Shown here: piece by piece, positions 4,794 through 50,700 of the stretch
How positions within the stretch are numbered: position 1 is the first letter of the stretch
Layout of the letters: every line of letters begins with the position of its first letter
Sequence record: NC_048047.1
DNA length: 64,000 nt
Reading direction: 5' to 3' (one strand)
Notes under the pieces: generated by a model
The model's database searches: none
Told to the model about the DNA's origin: nothing
What the model saw: only the letters and a program-made list of their open reading frames with translations
Translations under genes and position numbers: made by a program

Positions 4794-5210
4794 ATGGCTT
4801 CGCTCGTCTACAACTCGATGCTGGACGATCTCGTCAAGGGCGCGATCAACTTCAACAGCGACACCTTCAAGGTCATGCTGGTGACTTCGGCTTACACGCC
4901 GAACAAGGACACCCACACCCGCAAGAACCAAGTCACCAACGAAGTGACCGGCACCGGCTACACCGCCGGCGGGCAGGCTTCGGCTGTGACCATCACCTCC
5001 GACACCACCAACGACCGCGAAGACCTGTCCTTCGCCACCGTGACCTGGACGTCGGCGACGATCACCGCGCGCGCCGCCGTGATCTACAAGGACACCGGCA
5101 CGGCCTCGACGAGCCCGCTCGTCGCCTATGTCGACTTTGGTTCGGACGTCTCGTCCACGAACGCCAACTTCGCCGTGTCGTTCTCCAGCCCGCTGCGCTT
5201 CCAGAACTAA
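4794..5210 (+). CDS. Conserved phage structural hypothetical protein (138 aa)
   Basis: GAGGA RBS. The DTFKVMLVTSAYTP...EVTGTGYTAGG...TWTSATITARAAVIYK pattern is recognised from phage virion modules. Confidence 0.8.
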   Translation: MASLVYNSMLDDLVKGAINFNSDTFKVMLVTSAYTPNKDTHTRKNQVTNEVTGTGYTAGGQASAVTITSDTTNDREDLSFATVTWTSATITARAAVIYKDTGTASTSPLVAYVDFGSDVSSTNANFAVSFSSPLRFQN

Positions 5211-16523: not shown

Positions 16524-16599
16524 GCTGCCGTAGCTCTAGCGGTAGAGCGCACCCTTGGTAAGGGTGAGGTCGTGGGTTCGAATCCCACCGGTAGCACCA
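16524..16599 (+). tRNA. tRNA-Thr(GGT)
   Basis: caccc-tt GGT aa-gggtg; TTCGAAT T-loop; CCA end. Confidence 0.95.
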
Positions 16600-18286: not shown

Positions 18287-18352
18287 ATGACCTTCTCGAC
18301 CTTCCTTTTCCGAGAGATCGGCTCCGCGAGCCGAGATACCACCGCCTCCTAG
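18287..18352 (+). CDS. Putative 21-aa leader peptide MTFSTFLFREIGSASRDTTAS upstream of tRNA-Glu/Asp
   Basis: Same GCCACCTC-ATG start context as the leader at 26798; overlaps alternative hairpins. Confidence 0.4.
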   Translation: MTFSTFLFREIGSASRDTTAS

Positions 18353-18559: not shown

Positions 18560-18592
18560 TTTCGCCCGAACGGGCACAACCAATCGAAAGCA

Positions 18593-18760
18593 CCGGGCAA
18601 GAGCGCTTAGCGGCCTCCAAGCGCCTGGGTTACGCTGGAAACGCAGGGGTCGCCGGGTCGTGCGCAACGACAGCCCTGGTCAGTGACCGATGGTGGATAA
18701 GACATTGGTCCCAACCTGCTGTAGGTGGTTGGCGGCGCCGGGTCCGAGAACCCGGACGTA
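18593..18760 (+). ncRNA. Candidate structured small RNA (tRNA-sized multi-hairpin plus three further hairpins)
   Basis: GCGCTT/AAGCGC, GTCG/CGAC, GACCGATG/CATTGGTC, CCAACC/GGTTGG and CCGGGT/ACCCGG stems; no ORF. Confidence 0.4.
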
Positions 18761-18779
18761 ATCCCCTAGGAGCCTGATC

Positions 18780-18932
18780 ATGGCCGACCACGAGCACACC
18801 TCGCCCGAGATCGCGTCCCTGGCCGCCCGCGCCCTGCGCGACCCGGCCAGTTTGACCGAGGACGAGATCAAGAGCCTCGCGGCGTCCGCCCTGACCCAGG
18901 CGCCCGACAGACCACAGGCCGACGAGGCCTGA
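18780..18932 (+). CDS. Small phage hypothetical protein (50 aa, MADHEHTSPEIASLAARALRDP...AASALTQAPD)
   Basis: AGGAG RBS and good codon bias; not in the supplied ORF track because it is under 60 aa. Confidence 0.7.
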   Translation: MADHEHTSPEIASLAARALRDPASLTEDEIKSLAASALTQAPDRPQADEA

Positions 18933-19153
18933 ACCTCATACCCGCTGTGGCGCTAGTAGGATGCGCCAGTGGCCATGCCATCGAGGCTCACCGCATGGGG
19001 GGCCGGCGGAAGTAGCTCAGGTCCGCCTTGAGTGAAAACCCACATCACGTCGACCGGCCCCACTGCCTTGCATGCGCCGCTGACGCCCTTTGGAACCCTC
19101 GGTCAGGCCAGTCCTCACCGGGGGGTTTTCCTTTTATGTACGAAAAAATTCGC

Positions 19154-19200
19154 GTCACCGTGCATTTTTTCTTGACTTCTATTTCGGCCTGTGTCATAGG
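19154..19200 (+). promoter_or_regulatory. Promoter of tRNA array 2
   Basis: GTCACCGTG...TTCTTGACT (-35 at 19172), 17-nt spacer, CATAGG. Confidence 0.55.
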
Positions 19201-19306
19201 CCTAAATACGGCTTCACGAAGCTGCCGGAACGCAAGTTCCACCCGACGCTTCGGCGTCGGAAAATCTCAACCGCCCGATCGGGCAATCTCCGCCGGAACA
19301 AGGTCC

Positions 19307-19426
19307 ATGACCCGCATCCATACCACGCTGCCGACCGCCAAGCCCGCCTCCACCGGCGCGCTGACGCTCGCCTCGTGGCCGGCGTCGAGCAAGCCGCTAT
19401 TGCGGCACTCAGCGGTTCTCGCCTAA
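19307..19426 (+). CDS. 39-aa leader peptide MTRIHTTLPTAKPASTGALTLASWPASSKPLLRHSAVLA of tRNA array 2
   Basis: ATG at 19307, TAA at 19424; 33 of 39 residues are amino acids carried by the 12 downstream tRNAs. Confidence 0.7.
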   Translation: MTRIHTTLPTAKPASTGALTLASWPASSKPLLRHSAVLA

Positions 19427-19545
19427 CAGGCGACCGCTCCGGGTGCCGCTCCTAAGCCGCACCCGATCTCCCCACGACACCTCCCAACTGTCCAGGCGAA
19501 CCGGGTGCTCCTGATCTCTCAGGAGATCGCTCCTATTTGGTTCAT

Positions 19546-19621
19546 CTTGGCGTAGCGCAGTGGTAGCGCACTCGGTTTGGGACCGAGGGGTCGTGGGTTC
19601 GAATCCTCACCGCCGAGACCA
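19546..19621 (+). tRNA. tRNA-Pro(TGG)
   Basis: ctcgg-tt TGG ga-ccgag; CCA end. Confidence 0.95.
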
Positions 19622-19694
19622 TTTCACCCTCCGCCGGCATTGGCCGGGCGATCCGCGTGCGCCTGGGCGCCGGCGGGGGCGTGTTCTTTGTTGT

Positions 19695-19771
19695 GCCGGT
19701 GTAGCTCAGCCCGGTAGAGCGTCTGCCTCGTAAGCAGGGGGTCCCTGGTTCAAATCCAGGTGTCGGCACCA
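19695..19771 (+). tRNA. tRNA-Thr(CGT)
   Basis: tctgc-ct CGT aa-gcagg; CCA end. Confidence 0.9.
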
Positions 19772-19825
19772 CAAAGAACACGATCGCAAGATCATAGAGA
19801 AGGAACAGACAAGACACAGACTTTC

Positions 19826-19912
19826 GGGCGAGTAGCCGAGTGGTTAAAGGCACCTGACTCTTAATCAGGCGTGAGAAATCCTACGTGGGTTCGAATCCCA
19901 CCTCGCCCTCCA
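19826..19912 (+). tRNA. tRNA-Lys(CTT) with an unusual long variable arm
   Basis: cctga-ct CTT aa-tcagg; 15-nt variable region; T discriminator; CCA end. Confidence 0.85.
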
Positions 19913-19993
19913 TTGATACCCATATTCCCGAGCGGGAAGATGCTGGCCAGGACAGGGGTCCTGGGATGAGAATCTTCCCGCACGGGATCATGG

Positions 19994-20080
19994 GCGGGTG
20001 TGGCGTAGTTGGTAGCCGCGCGAGTTTCAGGTACTCGTGGTCGAAAGGCCGTGGAGGTTCGAATCCTCTCACCCGCACCA
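19994..20080 (+). tRNA. tRNA-Leu(CAG)
   Basis: cgagt-tt CAG gt-actcg; long variable arm; CCA end. Confidence 0.95.
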
Positions 20081-20091
20081 ATCTGACCTGG

Positions 20092-20178
20092 GCCGAGGTG
20101 GCGGAATGGTAGACGCGCCGGCTTCAAGTCCCGTGTGCTCGCAAGAGCGTCCGAGTTCGACTCTCGGCCTCGGCACCA
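20092..20178 (+). tRNA. tRNA-Leu(CAA), weak anticodon stem
   Basis: Leu-type body; ccggc-tt CAA gt-cccgt has only 3 central Watson-Crick pairs. Confidence 0.8.
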
Positions 20179-20220
20179 AGACAGATTGGCGATGGAAAGC
20201 GAAGGTCATGCAAGGACAGG

Positions 20221-20308
20221 GCGGAAGTGGCGTAACGGTAGCCGCGCCAGATTGAGTATCTGGTGATCTGAAAGGGTCGTGGAGGTTCGATTCCTCTCTT
20301 CCGCACCA
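20221..20308 (+). tRNA. tRNA-Leu(GAG)
   Basis: ccaga-tt GAG ta-tctgg; CCA end. Confidence 0.95.
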
Positions 20309-20348
20309 AGTTAAACGAGAAGGAGTATTGAAGAAGTATTTGGTTTGT

Positions 20349-20420
20349 GCTGGAATGGCCTAGCGGTTAAGGCGCTGCATTGTGGATGCAGACACAATGG
20401 TTCGAATCCATTTTCCAGTG
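20349..20420 (+). tRNA. tRNA-His(GTG), no encoded CCA
   Basis: ctgca-tt GTG ga-tgcag; separated from tRNA-Ala by a single C. Confidence 0.85.
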
Positions 20421-20421
20421 C

Positions 20422-20496
20422 GGGGACGTAGCTCAGGGGTAGAGCGCCTGCTTTGCAAGCAGGATGTCGTGGGTTCGAATCCCACCGTCTCCACCA
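20422..20496 (+). tRNA. tRNA-Ala(TGC)
   Basis: G3:U70 pair; cctgc-tt TGC aa-gcagg; CCA end. Confidence 0.95.
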
Positions 20497-20561
20497 GACC
20501 AGGGGACCCAGGTCGCGGCGCCGGATCGGCGACCACCTGGGTCCGTGACAACGAGACGACT

Positions 20562-20655
20562 GGAGGGCTGGCAGAGTCTGGCTGAACGCACCCGATTCGA
20601 AATCGGGCAGGGGCTGAAAGGTCCCTCGGGGGTTCAAATCCCTCGCCCTCCGCCA
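20562..20655 (+). tRNA. tRNA-Ser(CGA)
   Basis: cccga-tt CGA aa-tcggg; long variable arm; GCCA end. Confidence 0.95.
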
Positions 20656-20673
20656 ACACGAGCCGGCATCTAT

Positions 20674-20765
20674 GGAAGGATGGCTGAGTCCGGCTGAAAG
20701 CACCCACCTGGAACGTGGGTAGGCCTTCGCGGGCCTCGGGGGTTCAAATCCCTCTCCTTCCGCCA
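20674..20765 (+). tRNA. tRNA-Ser(GGA)
   Basis: cccac-ct GGA ac-gtggg; long variable arm; GCCA end. Confidence 0.95.
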
Positions 20766-20799
20766 ATACCGAGCCGGCGCGGATCGCCGGCCGAAGCAA

Positions 20800-20889
20800 G
20801 GTGGGTTGACCGAGTGGTAAGGTGCGCGGTTGCTAACCGCAGGTCAGCCTGGAAGGGCTGCGGGGGTTCGATCCCCTCACCCACCGCCA
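20800..20889 (+). tRNA. tRNA-Ser(GCT)
   Basis: gcgg-tt GCT aa-ccgc; long variable arm; GCCA end. Confidence 0.95.
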
Positions 20890-20903
20890 CGCTTCGACGA
20901 TGC

Positions 20904-20980
20904 AGGGGTATAGCTCAACTGGCTAGAGCGGCGGTCTCCAAAACCGCAGGTTGGGGGTTCGAGTCCCTCTGCCCCTGCCA
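20904..20980 (+). tRNA. tRNA-Trp(CCA)
   Basis: gcggt-ct CCA aa-accgc; GCCA end. Confidence 0.95.
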
Positions 20981-21024: not shown

Positions 21025-21255
21025 ATGAGAAACCCCACCATGACCCAATGCCGTATGACGCGAGGCGAGACCGGTGTCCTGATCTCGTGGATTCCGACCG
21101 AGTTCGCCCAGGTCGGCCGCAAGATCGACCTGAAGGAAAAGGACTTCTGGTCGCGTGGCTGGATCGTCGACAAGGTCTGGACCACGATGGACGCCAAGGC
21201 GGTCGCCGAGCGCGGTCATGACTACCGCATCCACCGTCGGGCCACTGACGTCTAA
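21025..21255 (+). CDS. Hypothetical protein (76 aa)
   Basis: AGGAGG RBS and good codon bias. Confidence 0.8.
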   Translation: MRNPTMTQCRMTRGETGVLISWIPTEFAQVGRKIDLKEKDFWSRGWIVDKVWTTMDAKAVAERGHDYRIHRRATDV

Positions 21256-21289
21256 GAGGTTGGCCCTGCCATGTGTAGGCGCCGCAGCG

Positions 21290-21317
21290 GGGCCGCCCAG
21301 GATCACCTGGGCGGCCC
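21290..21317. terminator. 12-bp hairpin between convergent genes
   Basis: GGGCCGCCCAGG-atca-CCTGGGCGGCCC followed by TTGTCGTTTCT. Confidence 0.65.
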
Positions 21318-21326
21318 TTGTCGTTT

Positions 21327-21839
21327 CTAGGCGTGGATCGGCTCGTTGTCGATCACCACGCCCGGAGACGTAGCGATGACGAGCCAATAGCTGCCCGTCC
21401 AGCGAAGTACGGCGACGGCCGGAACGGGCACGTTGGTGCCCAGGGCCTGATACTTGATGACGGATTCATCCAGCGAGATGACGTCTTGGATACCGTCGGC
21501 ATTGGCGTCGACGATCGTCAGCGCGGGGAAGATGAGGCACGGCTTGCCAAGGCCCGCGTCCGCCGAGACGAATGTCGGAGGTTGAATTTGACCAATGGGC
21601 AACGTCGTCACGATGATCGGGAACGAGAGGTTACTGGGATCGGCGTTAGGGTGCCGCTGAATTTGCAGTTCCTGGCCGATACGGTTGCCAGGGTTCAGGG
21701 CCGCGTAGTTCAGATTGAAGTCTGCGTAGCCGGGTTTGGAAAGGCCACTGTGCATCACGACCACCGTTTCCTCACCCGTGGGGTTCAGGATGTCTCCGTC
21801 AAATTGGAGGGTAGCGTTGACCTTCACATTGCGCTGCAT
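21327..21839 (-). CDS. Hypothetical protein (170 aa)
   Basis: AGGAG RBS on the minus strand; codon usage less GC3-biased than the core genes. Confidence 0.75.
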   Translation of the reverse strand: MQRNVKVNATLQFDGDILNPTGEETVVVMHSGLSKPGYADFNLNYAALNPGNRIGQELQIQRHPNADPSNLSFPIIVTTLPIGQIQPPTFVSADAGLGKPCLIFPALTIVDANADGIQDVISLDESVIKYQALGTNVPVPAVAVLRWTGSYWLVIATSPGVVIDNEPIHA

Positions 21840-26797: not shown

Positions 26798-26896
26798 ATG
26801 AGCAAGATGTATCGTCAATTTGTGCGCCAGATTCAGTCGGTCCGAGTTAATCGGACGGGCCTTTCGCGCATGGTTGACGGTGGGACCTTCATCTAG
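26798..26896 (+). CDS. 32-aa leader peptide MSKMYRQFVRQIQSVRVNRTGLSRMVDGGTFI of tRNA array 3 (probably leaderless mRNA)
   Basis: ATG lies 7 nt after the -10 box; at codons 5-19, 14 of 15 residues are amino acids of the 8 downstream tRNAs. Confidence 0.75.
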   Translation: MSKMYRQFVRQIQSVRVNRTGLSRMVDGGTFI

Positions 26897-26926
26897 GGTT
26901 CCAACCCCGCTCAAACCCATCCTGCG

Positions 26927-26963
26927 AAGGCCCGTCCGATCTCTCGGACGGGCCTTTTCTTTT
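26927..26963 (+). terminator. Attenuator terminator (3:4) upstream of tRNA array 3
   Basis: AAGGCCCGTCCGA-tctc-TCGGACGGGCCTT-TTCTTTT; the 3' arm is duplicated exactly at 26851-26863. Confidence 0.85.
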
Positions 26964-27284: not shown

Positions 27285-27359
27285 TATACGGTTTAGCGTA
27301 TATTCGAGAAATATACGGTTTAGCGTATAATCCATTAGACAAATACGGAATTCCGTATA
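27285..27359. repeat. Three palindromic TATACG-N6-CGTATA boxes
   Basis: 27285-27302 and 27312-27329 are identical 18-mers; 27342-27359 is AATACG-GAATTC-CGTATA. Confidence 0.85.
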
Positions 27360-27393
27360 TTCGATGAGGTGAAGAACGAGAGGAACAAGATAC

Positions 27394-47736: not shown

Positions 47737-50700
47737 TGGCTGATCAGCTTTTCTCCTTCGCCACCGACAACGCCGCCATGATCGGGGTCAGCTACCTGTT
47801 CCCGAGCAAGGGACCGCGTCTGAAGGACCTGAAGATGAGCGCCTCGACCTATGGGGCGGCCATCCCGATCGTCTTTGGCGTGACGCGCGTGCCGGGCAAC
47901 ATGATCTGGGGCACAAAGATCAAGGAGCACAAGCGCAAGAAGCTCTCGATCGCCGGCAAGGGCGGCTTCTACATCAAGTACACCTATACCGCCTCGGTCG
48001 CCTTCGCCTTCTGCAAGGGCACGATCTCCCAGTTTCGCCGCATCTGGGCGGACGGCAAGATCATCTATGACGTGACGGGCACGGGCAAAAAGACCAACAA
48101 CGACAAGTACAAGATTCGCTTCTACCTGGGCAGCGAGGACCAAAATCCAAACTCGACGATCGAGGCAGACTTGGGGGTAGGCAACACGCCGGCCTTTCGA
48201 GGATTGGCCTATATGGTCATTGAAGACATGCCGCTGGAGGATTTCGGGAACCACATCCCGCAGATCACCGCCGAAGTCTACAACATGGAGAAGTTCTTCG
48301 ACACGCCCCAAGTGCCGGTGACTACTTATGTTGAGGACGGCACGCCGCGTCCGCTGCACTACTACGGCAACGCGCTGACGGTCGACGTCACCCGAGGCTA
48401 CTTCTACCTGACCGACCCGGAGTTCAACTCGTCCGGCAGGACCCACCTTCGCCGCTTCAGTTTGACGACCGGCAAGGAGGACATGGCCTTTGAGCCGCAA
48501 TTCCCCAACACCGCCCAGGGCGTGGGCATCTACGACAACCAGACGCTGCTCTACCTGCATGCCGTCAAGCGCGACGGCACCCTGTTCGTGGCGAACGGCG
48601 GTCTCAACAACTATGTCGCCGCCTCCCTGATCGAGCCGCAAGGCTACAACACCGTCGCCACGCAAGGCGTGTCTGACGCGTTCGGGCGCGACAATCCATA
48701 CATGGGCCTGGAGGCCGGCTATCCGCCGACCGATGGTTCAGCGCGCACGTGCGCCTATTCGCTCAGCAGTGGCGGACGCGAGATGGCCTTGTGGTGGGGG
48801 CTGTTTGGGGACGTCACGACGTTCGACATCACCGACGTGAATCTTTTCAGGCGGGATGGGGGCACGACGTGGCCAACCCGTATCGGTTCGGTCTATCATG
48901 GCGTCGTGGTCTGTGGTTCGATCGGCCTGAAGACCAACCAGTTCTATGGCGCGATCACGTCCGAAGAGGACGCCAACGCCCAATTCATCGACCTCTACGA
49001 TATCAATCAAGGAGGTGGCGGGCGTCTCTATGGCCGGCTCCAGCGCAAGTTCGCCGGCATCGCCCTCCAGCCCTACTGGATCATGTACGACGAAAGCGAT
49101 CCAGGCATCCTGATGGCCTATACCGAGGGCGACTCCTCGGTCTGGATGGCCAAGTTCTCCCTTGAGACCATGACCTGGAAGTGGCGCAAGCCGGTGGCGT
49201 ATGACGCCATCAGCCTGGACCCGCGCCTGGGCCGGATCGTCAATGGCCAATATGCCTGGATTCAGAACACGCCCTTCGGCCCGACCGCCGTGGCCATCTA
49301 CATCATCGACACGCGCACGGGCTCCTATGTGCTGCCCAACAACACCGCCGACGCACCGCCGGAACTCTACGCGCCCGAGGACATCCAGAGCCCCTATGTC
49401 AGCGACGCGGACTACCACGGCATCCCGGTCGACAAGCCAGGACTGACCGCCACCGGATCGCAGTTCCTCAACTGGTCCAACTACAGCATCGTCTCGATCC
49501 AGACCTTCGCGGGCATCGGCGACAATCGCATCACCTTCCTGGGCGGAAAGATCGGCTATTGCAGCCTGGGCTTCATCTGCGATCGTCTCCTGCGGATGGC
49601 GGGCCTGACCTCCTCGCAGATCGACATGTCGCGCTTGATGGACACCGAGGTCCTGGGATACGGCTGGGCGCAGTCCACCGACTTGAAGTCGGTGCTCGAC
49701 CAGTTGAAGATGATCTATCTCTTCGACATCGTCGAGAGCGACGGCAAGCTGACGGGGTTCCTGCGCACCGAGGGCACCAATGAAGGCGCGCCCGTCGCCT
49801 CGATCAAGAAGGCGGCCCTGGGCTCGACCGGTCCCGATGCGGTGGACTACTGGACCGAGACGCGCCTGCAAGAGGCCGAAATCCCCCAGAAGGTCTCGCT
49901 CACCTACATGAACTACGAGCGCGACTTCCAGGAGTCGGTCGCTCAATCCAAGCGGATCAGCAGTCCGACCCGCACGATGCAGTCCGATCAGTTGGTCGCC
50001 ATCGAGGCCAATCTGGTTCTCAAGCCGGCGGAGGCCAAGGAGCGTGTCAACCACATGCTCTACGACCAGTGGAACGAGCGCACCCGTCACACCACTCATC
50101 TGCCGTGGGCCTATCTCGATCTGGACCCATCGGATTGGGTCGAGGTGCGCCTGGACGATGACCGCACCTACGCCGACCGTATCCAACGCACCGAAGTCGG
50201 CGCGGACTTTTCGATCTCTGTCGAGGCCTATGGCCGCGACGGCGGCGCCTACGCGCCGTTGGAGCAGGAAGCCGATGGTGGGACGAGCCCGTCCCAGACG
50301 ATCTACGATCCGGGCCAATCGGTCCCGTACGTCATCAACACGCCGTTGCTGCGCGACAGCGACGACAGTGGCGGCAACATGAGCGTCTTCTATTACGGGG
50401 TTGGCAACAATACCGATAAGGAATTCGACGGCGCCACTCTCTTCCGGTCGATCAACGACATCGACTATGACGAACTCGACAGCTTCGACAAGGAGGTCGA
50501 ATGGGGCGTGACCACCATCGCCCTGCCGGCGCCGCCCACCGGGGACTTCTCGCTGGACTGGAAGACGCGCCTGATCATCCAACCCTACACCAAGTCGTTC
50601 GAGCTTGAATCGATCACTGACGATGAGCTTTGGGCGGGCCAGAACGCCGCCCTGCTGGGCGATGAGGTGATCCAGTTCCGTGACGCCGTCGAAAACCCCG

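Follow-up and report, generated by a model that had tools for sequence, protein, structure and literature searches.

A candidate codon-sampling leader upstream of a tRNA array in Caulobacter phage CcrBL9, and comparable leaders in other large phages

In the attenuators of amino-acid operons (trpL, hisL, leuL, pheL, thrL and the multivalent leaders of ilvGMEDA and thr), a promoter is followed by a short codon-enriched open reading frame (ORF), the stop codon of which lies in the loop of the 1:2 hairpin within a chain of mutually exclusive helices, and a hairpin/U-tract terminator is formed depending on the ribosome. A comparable layout is found in Caulobacter phage CcrBL9 (MH588546.1, 322 kb, Bertelyvirus), of which a 64-kb stretch (hereafter the window; record position = window position + 62000) has been studied. 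An ORF at 19307-19426, annotated in the record as a hypothetical protein (CcrBL9_gp149), stands upstream of an array of 12 tRNA genes. From sequence comparison, this ORF is probably the translated leader of a ribosome-mediated attenuator controlling the downstream array. The terminator component of the classical layout is found in its homologues and in another leader of the same phage (leader 3).

Codons for several amino acids are combined in the ilv and thr leaders too, and by analogy the CcrBL9 leader system appears to be most like them. On the other hand, the targets in CcrBL9 are tRNA genes rather than biosynthetic enzymes, so that the loop would sense the product itself; up to eight amino acids and 12 isoacceptors are sampled instead of runs of one to three; and the system is encoded by a phage, with a CcrBL9 copy devoid of the U-tract. 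Expression of translation components is also tied to the state of the cognate tRNA by pheM of pheST, which acts through ribosome stalling, and by T-box riboswitches. These elements control synthetases, for one amino acid each, and T-boxes bind uncharged tRNA directly without translation, whereas an Rfam scan of the whole window at the gathering threshold detects tRNAs only and no T-box or other family. Rho-dependent control by tnaC shares with the CcrBL9 locus a leader peptide, a C-rich, G-poor tract just past the stop codon and the lack of an intrinsic terminator. TnaC stalls at the stop codon on free tryptophan and masks a rut site, whereas neither an arrest motif nor a boxA is seen in the CcrBL9 leader, and its homologues use intrinsic terminators. 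In full-text searches of one limited literature collection, no tRNA genes or phage tRNA arrays were found described as being controlled by a leader peptide.

Codon content of leaders and tRNA arrays

The ORF at 19307-19426 encodes MTRIHTTLPTAKPASTGALTLASWPASSKPLLRHSAVLA. Among the 39 residues, 33 belong to P, T, K, L, H, A, S and W, the eight amino acids of the array (Pro-UGG, Thr-CGU, Lys-CUU, Leu-CAG/CAA/GAG, His-GUG, Ala-UGC, Ser-CGA/GGA/GCU and Trp-CCA), and strictly cognate codons are present for all 12 anticodons under strict wobble rules, in which G34 reads C/U, C34 reads G and U34 reads A/G. Both features had been pointed out in an earlier sequence-only reading of this DNA, and direct reading confirms them. 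Such full coverage arises in none of 60000 random 38-codon draws from the long ORFs of the window and in 3.8e-4 of draws from its short six-frame open stretches; a model of independent, identically distributed codons drawn from the phage's own gene codon usage gives 3.1e-4. The fraction of residues within the set is 0.87 against a background of 0.42-0.50 (standard deviation ~0.12), and 0.87 or more is reached by ~1e-3 of random window stretches. The two strands of the window contain 521 ATG or GTG ORFs of 30-50 codons; none of the others reaches 12/12 coverage, and this ORF also has the highest in-set fraction. The codon match to the array thus exceeds chance, at about 3e-4 or less, and its signal comes mostly from the amino acids.

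The records of the Bertelyvirus phages CcrSC (gp144), C1 (gp135) and RB23 (gp135) also annotate this 120-nt ORF. The four Bertelyvirus lineages are near-identical over 19282-~19470 and 19497-19530, with two substitutions only in the ORF (CCG->ACG and CTG->CTT) and a peptide identity of 97-100%, whereas identity is only 50-90% in the promoter spacer, the C-rich tract at 19466-96, the tRNA flanks and the neighbouring genes. This near-invariant block of 190 nt between divergent flanks could by itself reflect either a structured RNA or a doubly constrained leader. In 18560-19560, Rfam returns chance-level matches only (E >= 0.5, far under the gathering scores). A transfer-messenger RNA was considered from the ...AVLA ending of the peptide and dropped, as none is detected by ARAGORN or Rfam.

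ORFs of 39-45 codons are found at the equivalent position, 5' of syntenic Pro...Ser arrays, in five other lineages of related phages. The lineages with a leader are Bertelyvirus, Colossusvirus, the phiCbK-like phages and three Brevundimonas phage groups, to which a metagenomic contig can be added. The leader of CcrColossus and CcrPW reads MTF[SL]THKPSTLKPATGAASLAHASLLTPATSKPSLSRSL, that of Brevundimonas phages Kikimora and Gurke MTKLSHKLSLHSTAA.ALSTLA.APATLSPKSPTTGGVTSATETI, and that of the phiCbK-like phages (CcrRogue, L038; Karma, L049; RBC63; phiCbK gp083) MFALSH.SLSTKAASPATLSLAL.ATA.KPSTKPTTSASHST..., with further homologues in Bajun, Marchewka and Domovoi. The anticodons of their own arrays are covered in ratios of 10/10, 12/12, 13/13, 10/10, 10/10 and 11/11, and the values 12/13 and 8/8 also appear when the metagenomic contig is included in the list. 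The rare codon TTG, decoded by Leu-CAA and making up 8% of Leu codons in phage genes, is present in all leaders, where it takes at least four different positions. A tblastn search with the 39-residue leader, a protein-database search and a locus search with the leader alignment retrieved only the known Bertelyvirus and Colossusvirus copies, the leader being too short or too variable a query for sequence searches, and the IMG/VR relatives anchored on the neighbouring NadR-like gene are without tRNA arrays.

If the frame and the codon set matter while the peptide does not, an excess of nonsynonymous changes is expected, with frame, length, start and the stop codon in its loop retained. Codon-wise alignment between lineages gives changes spread evenly over codon positions 1, 2 and 3, and nonsynonymous to synonymous counts of 6:1 (L038 versus L049), 2:0 (Kikimora versus Gurke) and 17:3 (CcrBL9 versus Colossus), and the frame, the length, the start and the stop codon within a hairpin loop are kept across lineages. 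From these comparisons, the leader ORFs appear to evolve in a manner opposite to that of a protein under purifying selection.

Two other ORFs of CcrBL9 stand in a similar relation to tRNA genes. Leader 3 (32 codons, rich in Y, R, Q, F, V, I and N) precedes Val, Ile, Val, Gln, Asn, Arg and Phe tRNAs and covers 7/7 anticodons, and a 21-codon ORF at 18287-18352 precedes tRNA-Glu and tRNA-Asp with 2/2. The latter is kept as MTY..S..EREA..GRDTTAA in Colossusvirus and Brevundimonas phages with merely 2-3 Glu/Asp codons, and both ORFs have homologues in other genera. The CcrBL9 leaders cover 100% of the anticodons of their own array and 0-45% of those of other arrays. In a 279-kb metagenomic relative (L044, IMGVR_UViG_3300001199_000001), the array is split among protein genes and the parts have separate leaders: the T/K/P/M-rich MITKTTTPMTMKPTKP... 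precedes the part with Pro x3, Met, Thr x3, Lys..., and the H/A/S-rich MIKTATHSSAHSSAASAASSTAARAVSASASSLS the part with His, Ala x3 and Ser x4. In the same contig, a leader with an LLLL run stands before five Leu tRNAs. Sphingobium phage Lacusarx (L055, KY629563), which belongs to a different genus and has arrays of another composition, has leaders at 18665-18769 (K/G/D/E/R/F) and 20037-20105 (S/L/T/H/Q/C/W) that mirror its two arrays. The K/G/D/E/R/F leader, ...FTRFGKRDRREGERGFSL, precedes Lys, Lys, Gly, Asp, Glu, Glu, Gly, Arg and Phe, and the S/L/T/H/Q/C/W leader, MFTQTTLLTQCHYWQLLSSSSL, precedes Ser, Leu, Leu, Thr, His, Gln, Ser, Cys and Trp. The leader at 20037-20105 is served by a leaderless promoter, and the hairpin CCCTC-TAA-GGGAG holds its stop codon in the loop. 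In unrelated AT-rich jumbo-phage contigs, MTKIKIKNMKSKRKYKR is found before four Lys tRNAs, MKTTIKNTSSRSRSSKSSEVRLYS before Arg, Ser and Ser, and MRNVSKHSKSFKSFWSH... before Lys, Lys, Phe, Ser and Trp; the arrays concerned in these contigs are Lys x4, Arg-Ser-Ser, Arg-Ser-Arg, Lys-Lys-Phe-Ser-Trp and Arg/Leu/Ile/Lys.

Because some of these leaders were first spotted by eye, a selection-blind rank test was run on 39 arrays, in which the best-scoring ORF 5' of an array is ranked against those found 5' of all other arrays. The rank is first for seven arrays (1 expected) and within the top three for 12, with a mean of 13.0 versus 20 (P=6e-5). This test is conservative, since the leaders of sister phages count as mismatches. 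In a permutation of 11 leader-array pairs, 0 of 200000 trials reached the observed match. Judging from these sequences, the composition of a leader tracks the content of its own array across phages.

Predicted RNA structures and the proposed switch

In most lineages, the stretch from the leader stop codon to the first tRNA contains a GC-rich hairpin followed by a U-tract, as in Kikimora, Gurke, Bajun, Marchewka, Domovoi, L038, L049, L044a/b, L036, L026 and L046. The one after phiCbK gp083 was annotated as a terminator by the depositors of the record; in phiCbK (JX100813), gp083, this terminator and tRNA-Pro are located around 49540-49800. Colossus and PW have only a weak CCCC/GGGG hairpin at this position. 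An antiterminator, in the form of an ORF-internal copy of the 3' arm of the terminator, is recognized in L036, L026, L046 and leader 3 of CcrBL9. The effect of the ribosome was modelled by constraint folding, an equilibrium model with a ribosome footprint of 30 nt. With the A-site at codons 3-13 of leader 3 (UAU CGU CAA UUU GUG CGC CAG AUU CAG), the antiterminator has a probability of ~0.95 and the terminator of ~0, and at the other ribosome positions the terminator probability is 0.8-0.97, so that leader 3 behaves in the model as a textbook attenuator with a clean switch. Terminator probability also depends on ribosome position in L038 (0.0-0.3 versus 0.9-0.98) and in Colossus (0.05-0.33 versus ~0.8). 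Leader 3, L044a/b and one Lacusarx leader (Lacusarx B) start 7 nt after the -10 element, and their mRNAs would be leaderless.

The leader region of the 12-tRNA array of CcrBL9 folds far better than its shuffled versions (z=-4.7). The sequence motifs on which the sequence-only reading had built its hairpins are all present, namely the stop-codon hairpin at 19411-38, CGGGTGC at 19440 and 19502 with GCACCCG at 19459-65, the CAGGCGA repeat (19427 and 19493) and CTCCTGA/TCAGGAG at 19508-25, and it was right that no clear U-tract follows 19525. Its promoter at 19172 stands in part: the -35 TTGACT is readable in a conserved block, whereas the -10 CATAGG is weak and a sigma-70 consensus scan does not call the site. 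A TTGACA-N17-TAAAGG/TATAAG promoter of the same layout stands 5' of the sister leaders. Hairpin 1:2 holds the stop codon (19424-26) in its loop, an arrangement that recurs in Kikimora, Bajun, L038, Lacusarx and leader 3, and the CGGGTGC/GCACCCG pair of hairpin 2:3 is shared with the phiCbK-like L038. Helices 1:2, 2:3 and 3:4 and the extended final hairpin share segments and are thus mutually exclusive. The extended hairpin at 19498-19543 shares GGGUG with helix 3:4 and competes also with a pairing of 19464-71 with 19522-29, a perfect complement. Its outer arms are GAACC/GGUUC in CcrBL9 and AGCUGAA/UUCAGUU in C1, so pairing is kept through compensatory change. By position, the core of this hairpin (19508-25) is homologous to the intrinsic terminators found in the sister phages; it was tried as a ribosome-controlled terminator and rejected, as it is present in all modelled states. 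RNAalifold on a MAFFT alignment of 11 attenuators was uninformative because the helices are lineage-specific in sequence, and per-lineage folds were compared instead.

The tract after the leader stop codon is C-rich (GC skew -0.43 at 19430-89), and its sequence is not conserved. A YCCCAA(A) motif is kept in the 3:4 loop (19466-19501 in the window; L006, L007, L008, L051 and L052) in three genera, and the loop sequence around it differs between CcrBL9 and C1.

Constraint folding of the CcrBL9 leader gives two states. Hairpin 2:3 and the extended hairpin are formed when no ribosome is present or when it occupies the last codons or the stop codon; a ribosome at about codon 10 and codons 25-28 goes with 1:2 and 3:4 and a weakened final hairpin. 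A switch governed by ribosome position is plausible in this model. The leader would then act as a codon sampler, on which the ribosome must use every tRNA species encoded by the array. When one of these tRNAs is scarce, being rare in the host or depleted in infection, the ribosome would stall within the first ~28 codons, hairpin 1:2 (19398-19449) would stay closed, and 19459-65 would pair with 19502-08 (3:4), which would weaken the final hairpin, let the polymerase enter the array and raise tRNA production. Upon fast decoding, the ribosome would reach the last codons or the stop codon and melt 1:2, hairpin 2:3 (19440-65) would form, and segment 4 would be left free for the extended hairpin 19498-19543, presumably lowering the output of the array. 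In CcrBL9, array output could be lowered by pausing or weak termination at 19543, by loading of Rho onto the C-rich tract, or by obstruction of 5' processing of tRNA-Pro. That the leader is translated, that ribosomes stall on it, which way the switch works and what the phage gains, whether tRNA homeostasis or a response to host tRNA depletion, are all inferred from sequence.

The proposed attenuator and its rivals

The interpretation of the ORF as a stalling sensor, offered by the sequence-only reading, is strongly supported by comparative evidence, because coverage is complete in six lineages, substitutions are not protein-like, composition covaries with the arrays, and terminator/antiterminator designs are predicted in the homologues and leader 3. 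The Rho-dependent or processing output that it had also proposed is not specifically supported.

Several observations speak against an attenuator at this locus or against its generality. Synonymous codon choice, with the peptide fixed, is not significant (P=0.17; resampled codons still give 12/12 in 17%), and 16 of 38 codons, including ACC x4, GCC x4, CTA and TCA, are not strictly cognate to the array tRNAs; the ACC codons are readable by the Thr-GGU of the phage, from a separate array at 16524. The commonest low-complexity peptides from GC-rich DNA are rich in P, T, A and S. The 5' untranslated region (UTR), ~100 nt long, offers the ribosome a weak binding signal, AAGG at 3 nt from the ATG. 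No U-tract follows 19525 or 19543, and hence the CcrBL9 copy is missing a canonical intrinsic terminator. The core hairpin forms in nearly every modelled ribosome state; at equilibrium, ribosome-free RNA adopts the same state as RNA with the ribosome at the stop codon, and the switch occurs only at some stall positions. The geometry of L044b gives the opposite logic in constraint folding. Some of the 39 arrays in the rank test are without any leader, the Kikimora leader has 10 Thr codons and no Thr tRNA is found in its array, and the Trp codon of the Marchewka leader corresponds to a tRNA-Trp in another array. Marchewka and Kikimora thus weaken a strict covariation for Trp and Thr.

The missing U-tract would be explained by decay, if an ancestral working leader, resembling those of the phiCbK-like and Brevundimonas phages, had lost it in the CcrBL9 and Colossus groups and the array were now expressed constitutively from the promoter. 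The weak hairpin of Colossus and PW and the insensitivity of the modelled core hairpin to ribosome position are consistent with this. A dead element should drift, however, and the ORF, the alternative helices and the final hairpin count among the best-conserved 250 nt of this region, in a comparison of phages that differ by 15-25% elsewhere. In the final hairpin, the outer arms have been altered on both sides with pairing retained, and full anticodon coverage has been maintained, including a new Trp codon, so decay is unlikely. It is quite unlikely that the open frame is incidental to a structured, non-coding 5' leader of the pre-tRNA acting in processing, stability, or Rho or antitermination control. 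Such an RNA would fit the conservation of nucleotides within the genus, where synonymous changes are almost absent, as well as the strong predicted structure, the weak Shine-Dalgarno sequence and the position of the final hairpin next to the RNase P site of tRNA-Pro, whereas the frame, the start and the stop codon in the loop persist in six lineages at only ~50% nucleotide identity, no Rfam family matches, and an untranslated RNA has no reason to follow the array in composition and coverage.

That gp149 is a small functional protein, placed beside the array by chance, is very improbable. A coding sequence is indeed annotated in all Bertelyvirus records, phiCbK, RBC63 and Bajun, and the peptide is nearly invariant within the genus. 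Between lineages, however, nonsynonymous changes dominate and the three codon positions change equally; the peptide is of low complexity, and a protein-database search gave no homologues outside these loci; and three unrelated leader families, together with leaders in unrelated phages, match their own arrays. Beyond CcrBL9, the sequences tip the balance slightly towards the view that large phages of several unrelated groups use codon-sampler leaders with attenuators as a private feedback loop for each array.

Why phages carry tRNAs and how these are expressed is an open question, for which compensation of codon usage, replacement of degraded host tRNAs and evasion of anticodon nucleases have been proposed. 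The attenuator, if real, would be the first known regulatory link from tRNA demand to the transcription of tRNA genes. A classic bacterial mechanism would then apply to a new kind of target, stable RNA genes whose products act back on their own sensor. The attenuator would provide the phage with a built-in sensor of host tRNA shortage or of a tRNA-cleaving defence, switching on replacement tRNAs, and CcrBL9 would have three such loops (18287, 19307 and 26798). The leaders would predict which tRNAs limit in each host and could serve as compact, programmable sensors of tRNA availability, and dozens of "hypothetical proteins" beside phage tRNA clusters would have to be annotated as regulatory leaders. 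An RNA sequencing series of phiCbK infection exists (PMC10688885).

Layout of the locus and other observations

The features are collected in Table 1. At the promoter-like site, GTTTCTTGAC and CCTGTGTCATAGGC are unchanged in four phages, and the spacer between them is variable. The hairpin between tRNA-Pro and tRNA-Thr could be an internal terminator, a processing signal or a stop point for the polymerase.

Table 1. Features of the CcrBL9 window and leader ORFs of other contigs (contig coordinates follow the contig name)
Feature	Position	Strand	Details
21-codon ORF	18287..18352	+	MTFSTFLFREIGSASRDTTAS; before tRNA-Glu and tRNA-Asp
Terminator-like hairpin and U-tract closing the upstream unit	19110..19135	+	AGTCCTCACCGGGGGGTT + TTCCTTTTAT; block kept in CcrSC, C1 and RB23
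Promoter-like site (putative)	19172..19200	+	-35 TTGACT 19172-77; -10-like CATAGG 19195-200
60-nt insertion in the 5' UTR, CcrBL9 only	19207..19266	+	hairpin CCGACGC-ttcg-GCGTCGG; missing from CcrSC, C1 and RB23 in the alignment
Invariant 5' UTR block	19282..19306	+	CTCCGCCGGAACAAGGTCC; weak Shine-Dalgarno-like AAGG, 3 nt 5' of ATG
Candidate leader ORF (CcrBL9_gp149)	19307..19426	+	39 codons + TAA; 12/12 anticodons; rank 1/521; homologues in 6 lineages
Hairpin 1:2	19398..19449	+	inner stem AGCGG..TCGCCT/AGGCGA-CCGCT 19411-38; outer stem GCGGCAC 19402-08/GTGCCGC 19443-49
Hairpin 2:3	19440..19465	+	CGGGTGCCGCT / AGCCGCACCCG; mutually exclusive with outer 1:2 and with 3:4
Helix 3:4	19459..19508	+	GCACCCG/CGGGTGC (19459-65 with 19502-08); encloses C-rich, G-poor loop 19466-19501 with CCUCCCAAC
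Extended final hairpin	19498..19543	+	around CTCCTGA-tctc-TCAGGAG, core 19508-25; without adjacent U-tract; 2 nt before tRNA-Pro
12-tRNA array	19546..20980	+	Pro, Thr, Lys, Leu x3, His, Ala, Ser x3, Trp; ARAGORN and Rfam
GC-rich hairpin and U-rich tail between tRNA-Pro and tRNA-Thr	19628..19690	+	CCCTCCGCCGGC...GCCGGCGGGGG; kept in CcrBL9, CcrSC, C1 and RB23
Strong intrinsic terminator ending the unit	21289..21328	+	after small gene gp150 (21025-21255)
Leader 3 ORF	26798-26896	+	MSKMYRQFVRQIQSVRVNRTGLSRMVDGGTFI
Leader 3 element	26798..26957	+	promoter TTGACA-N18-TATAAG-N7-ATG (leaderless); antiterminator 26851-63; terminator 26926-57
Leader ORFs, L044	6434-6529, 8093-8179, 10383-10487
Leader ORFs, jumbo-phage contig L036	1983-2036, 3874-3948	-
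Leader ORF, jumbo-phage contig L026	5388-5447
Leader ORF, jumbo-phage contig L046	6188-6283	-
Leader ORF, jumbo-phage contig L045	3089-3190	-

Long hairpins are also found in other spacers between the tRNA genes, such as 19925-19990 and 20505-20550. The putative tRNA-Lys(CUU) of the array (19826-19912) is 87 nt long and of class II; its variable arm is long, its D arm is Ser-like (GCCGAGTGGTTAAAGGC), and it has U73. This form is kept in CcrPW, Colossus, Kikimora, Gurke and RBC63. A degenerate tRNA-Thr(GGU) in Colossus (L006 2214-2283) is missed by ARAGORN, and the tRNA-Glu/Asp pair found by ARAGORN in C1 and RB23 (L003 4398-4574) is omitted from the records of these phages. RB23 carries a 15-nt tandem duplication of segment 2, ACCGCTCCGGGTGCC (L004 ~5110-5125). 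Inside array 3, between tRNA-Ile and tRNA-Val, 27285-27362 contains three 21-nt imperfect palindromes, TATACGGTTTAGCGTATA(T/A)TC, with promoter-like hexamers, and these palindromes look like operator sites.

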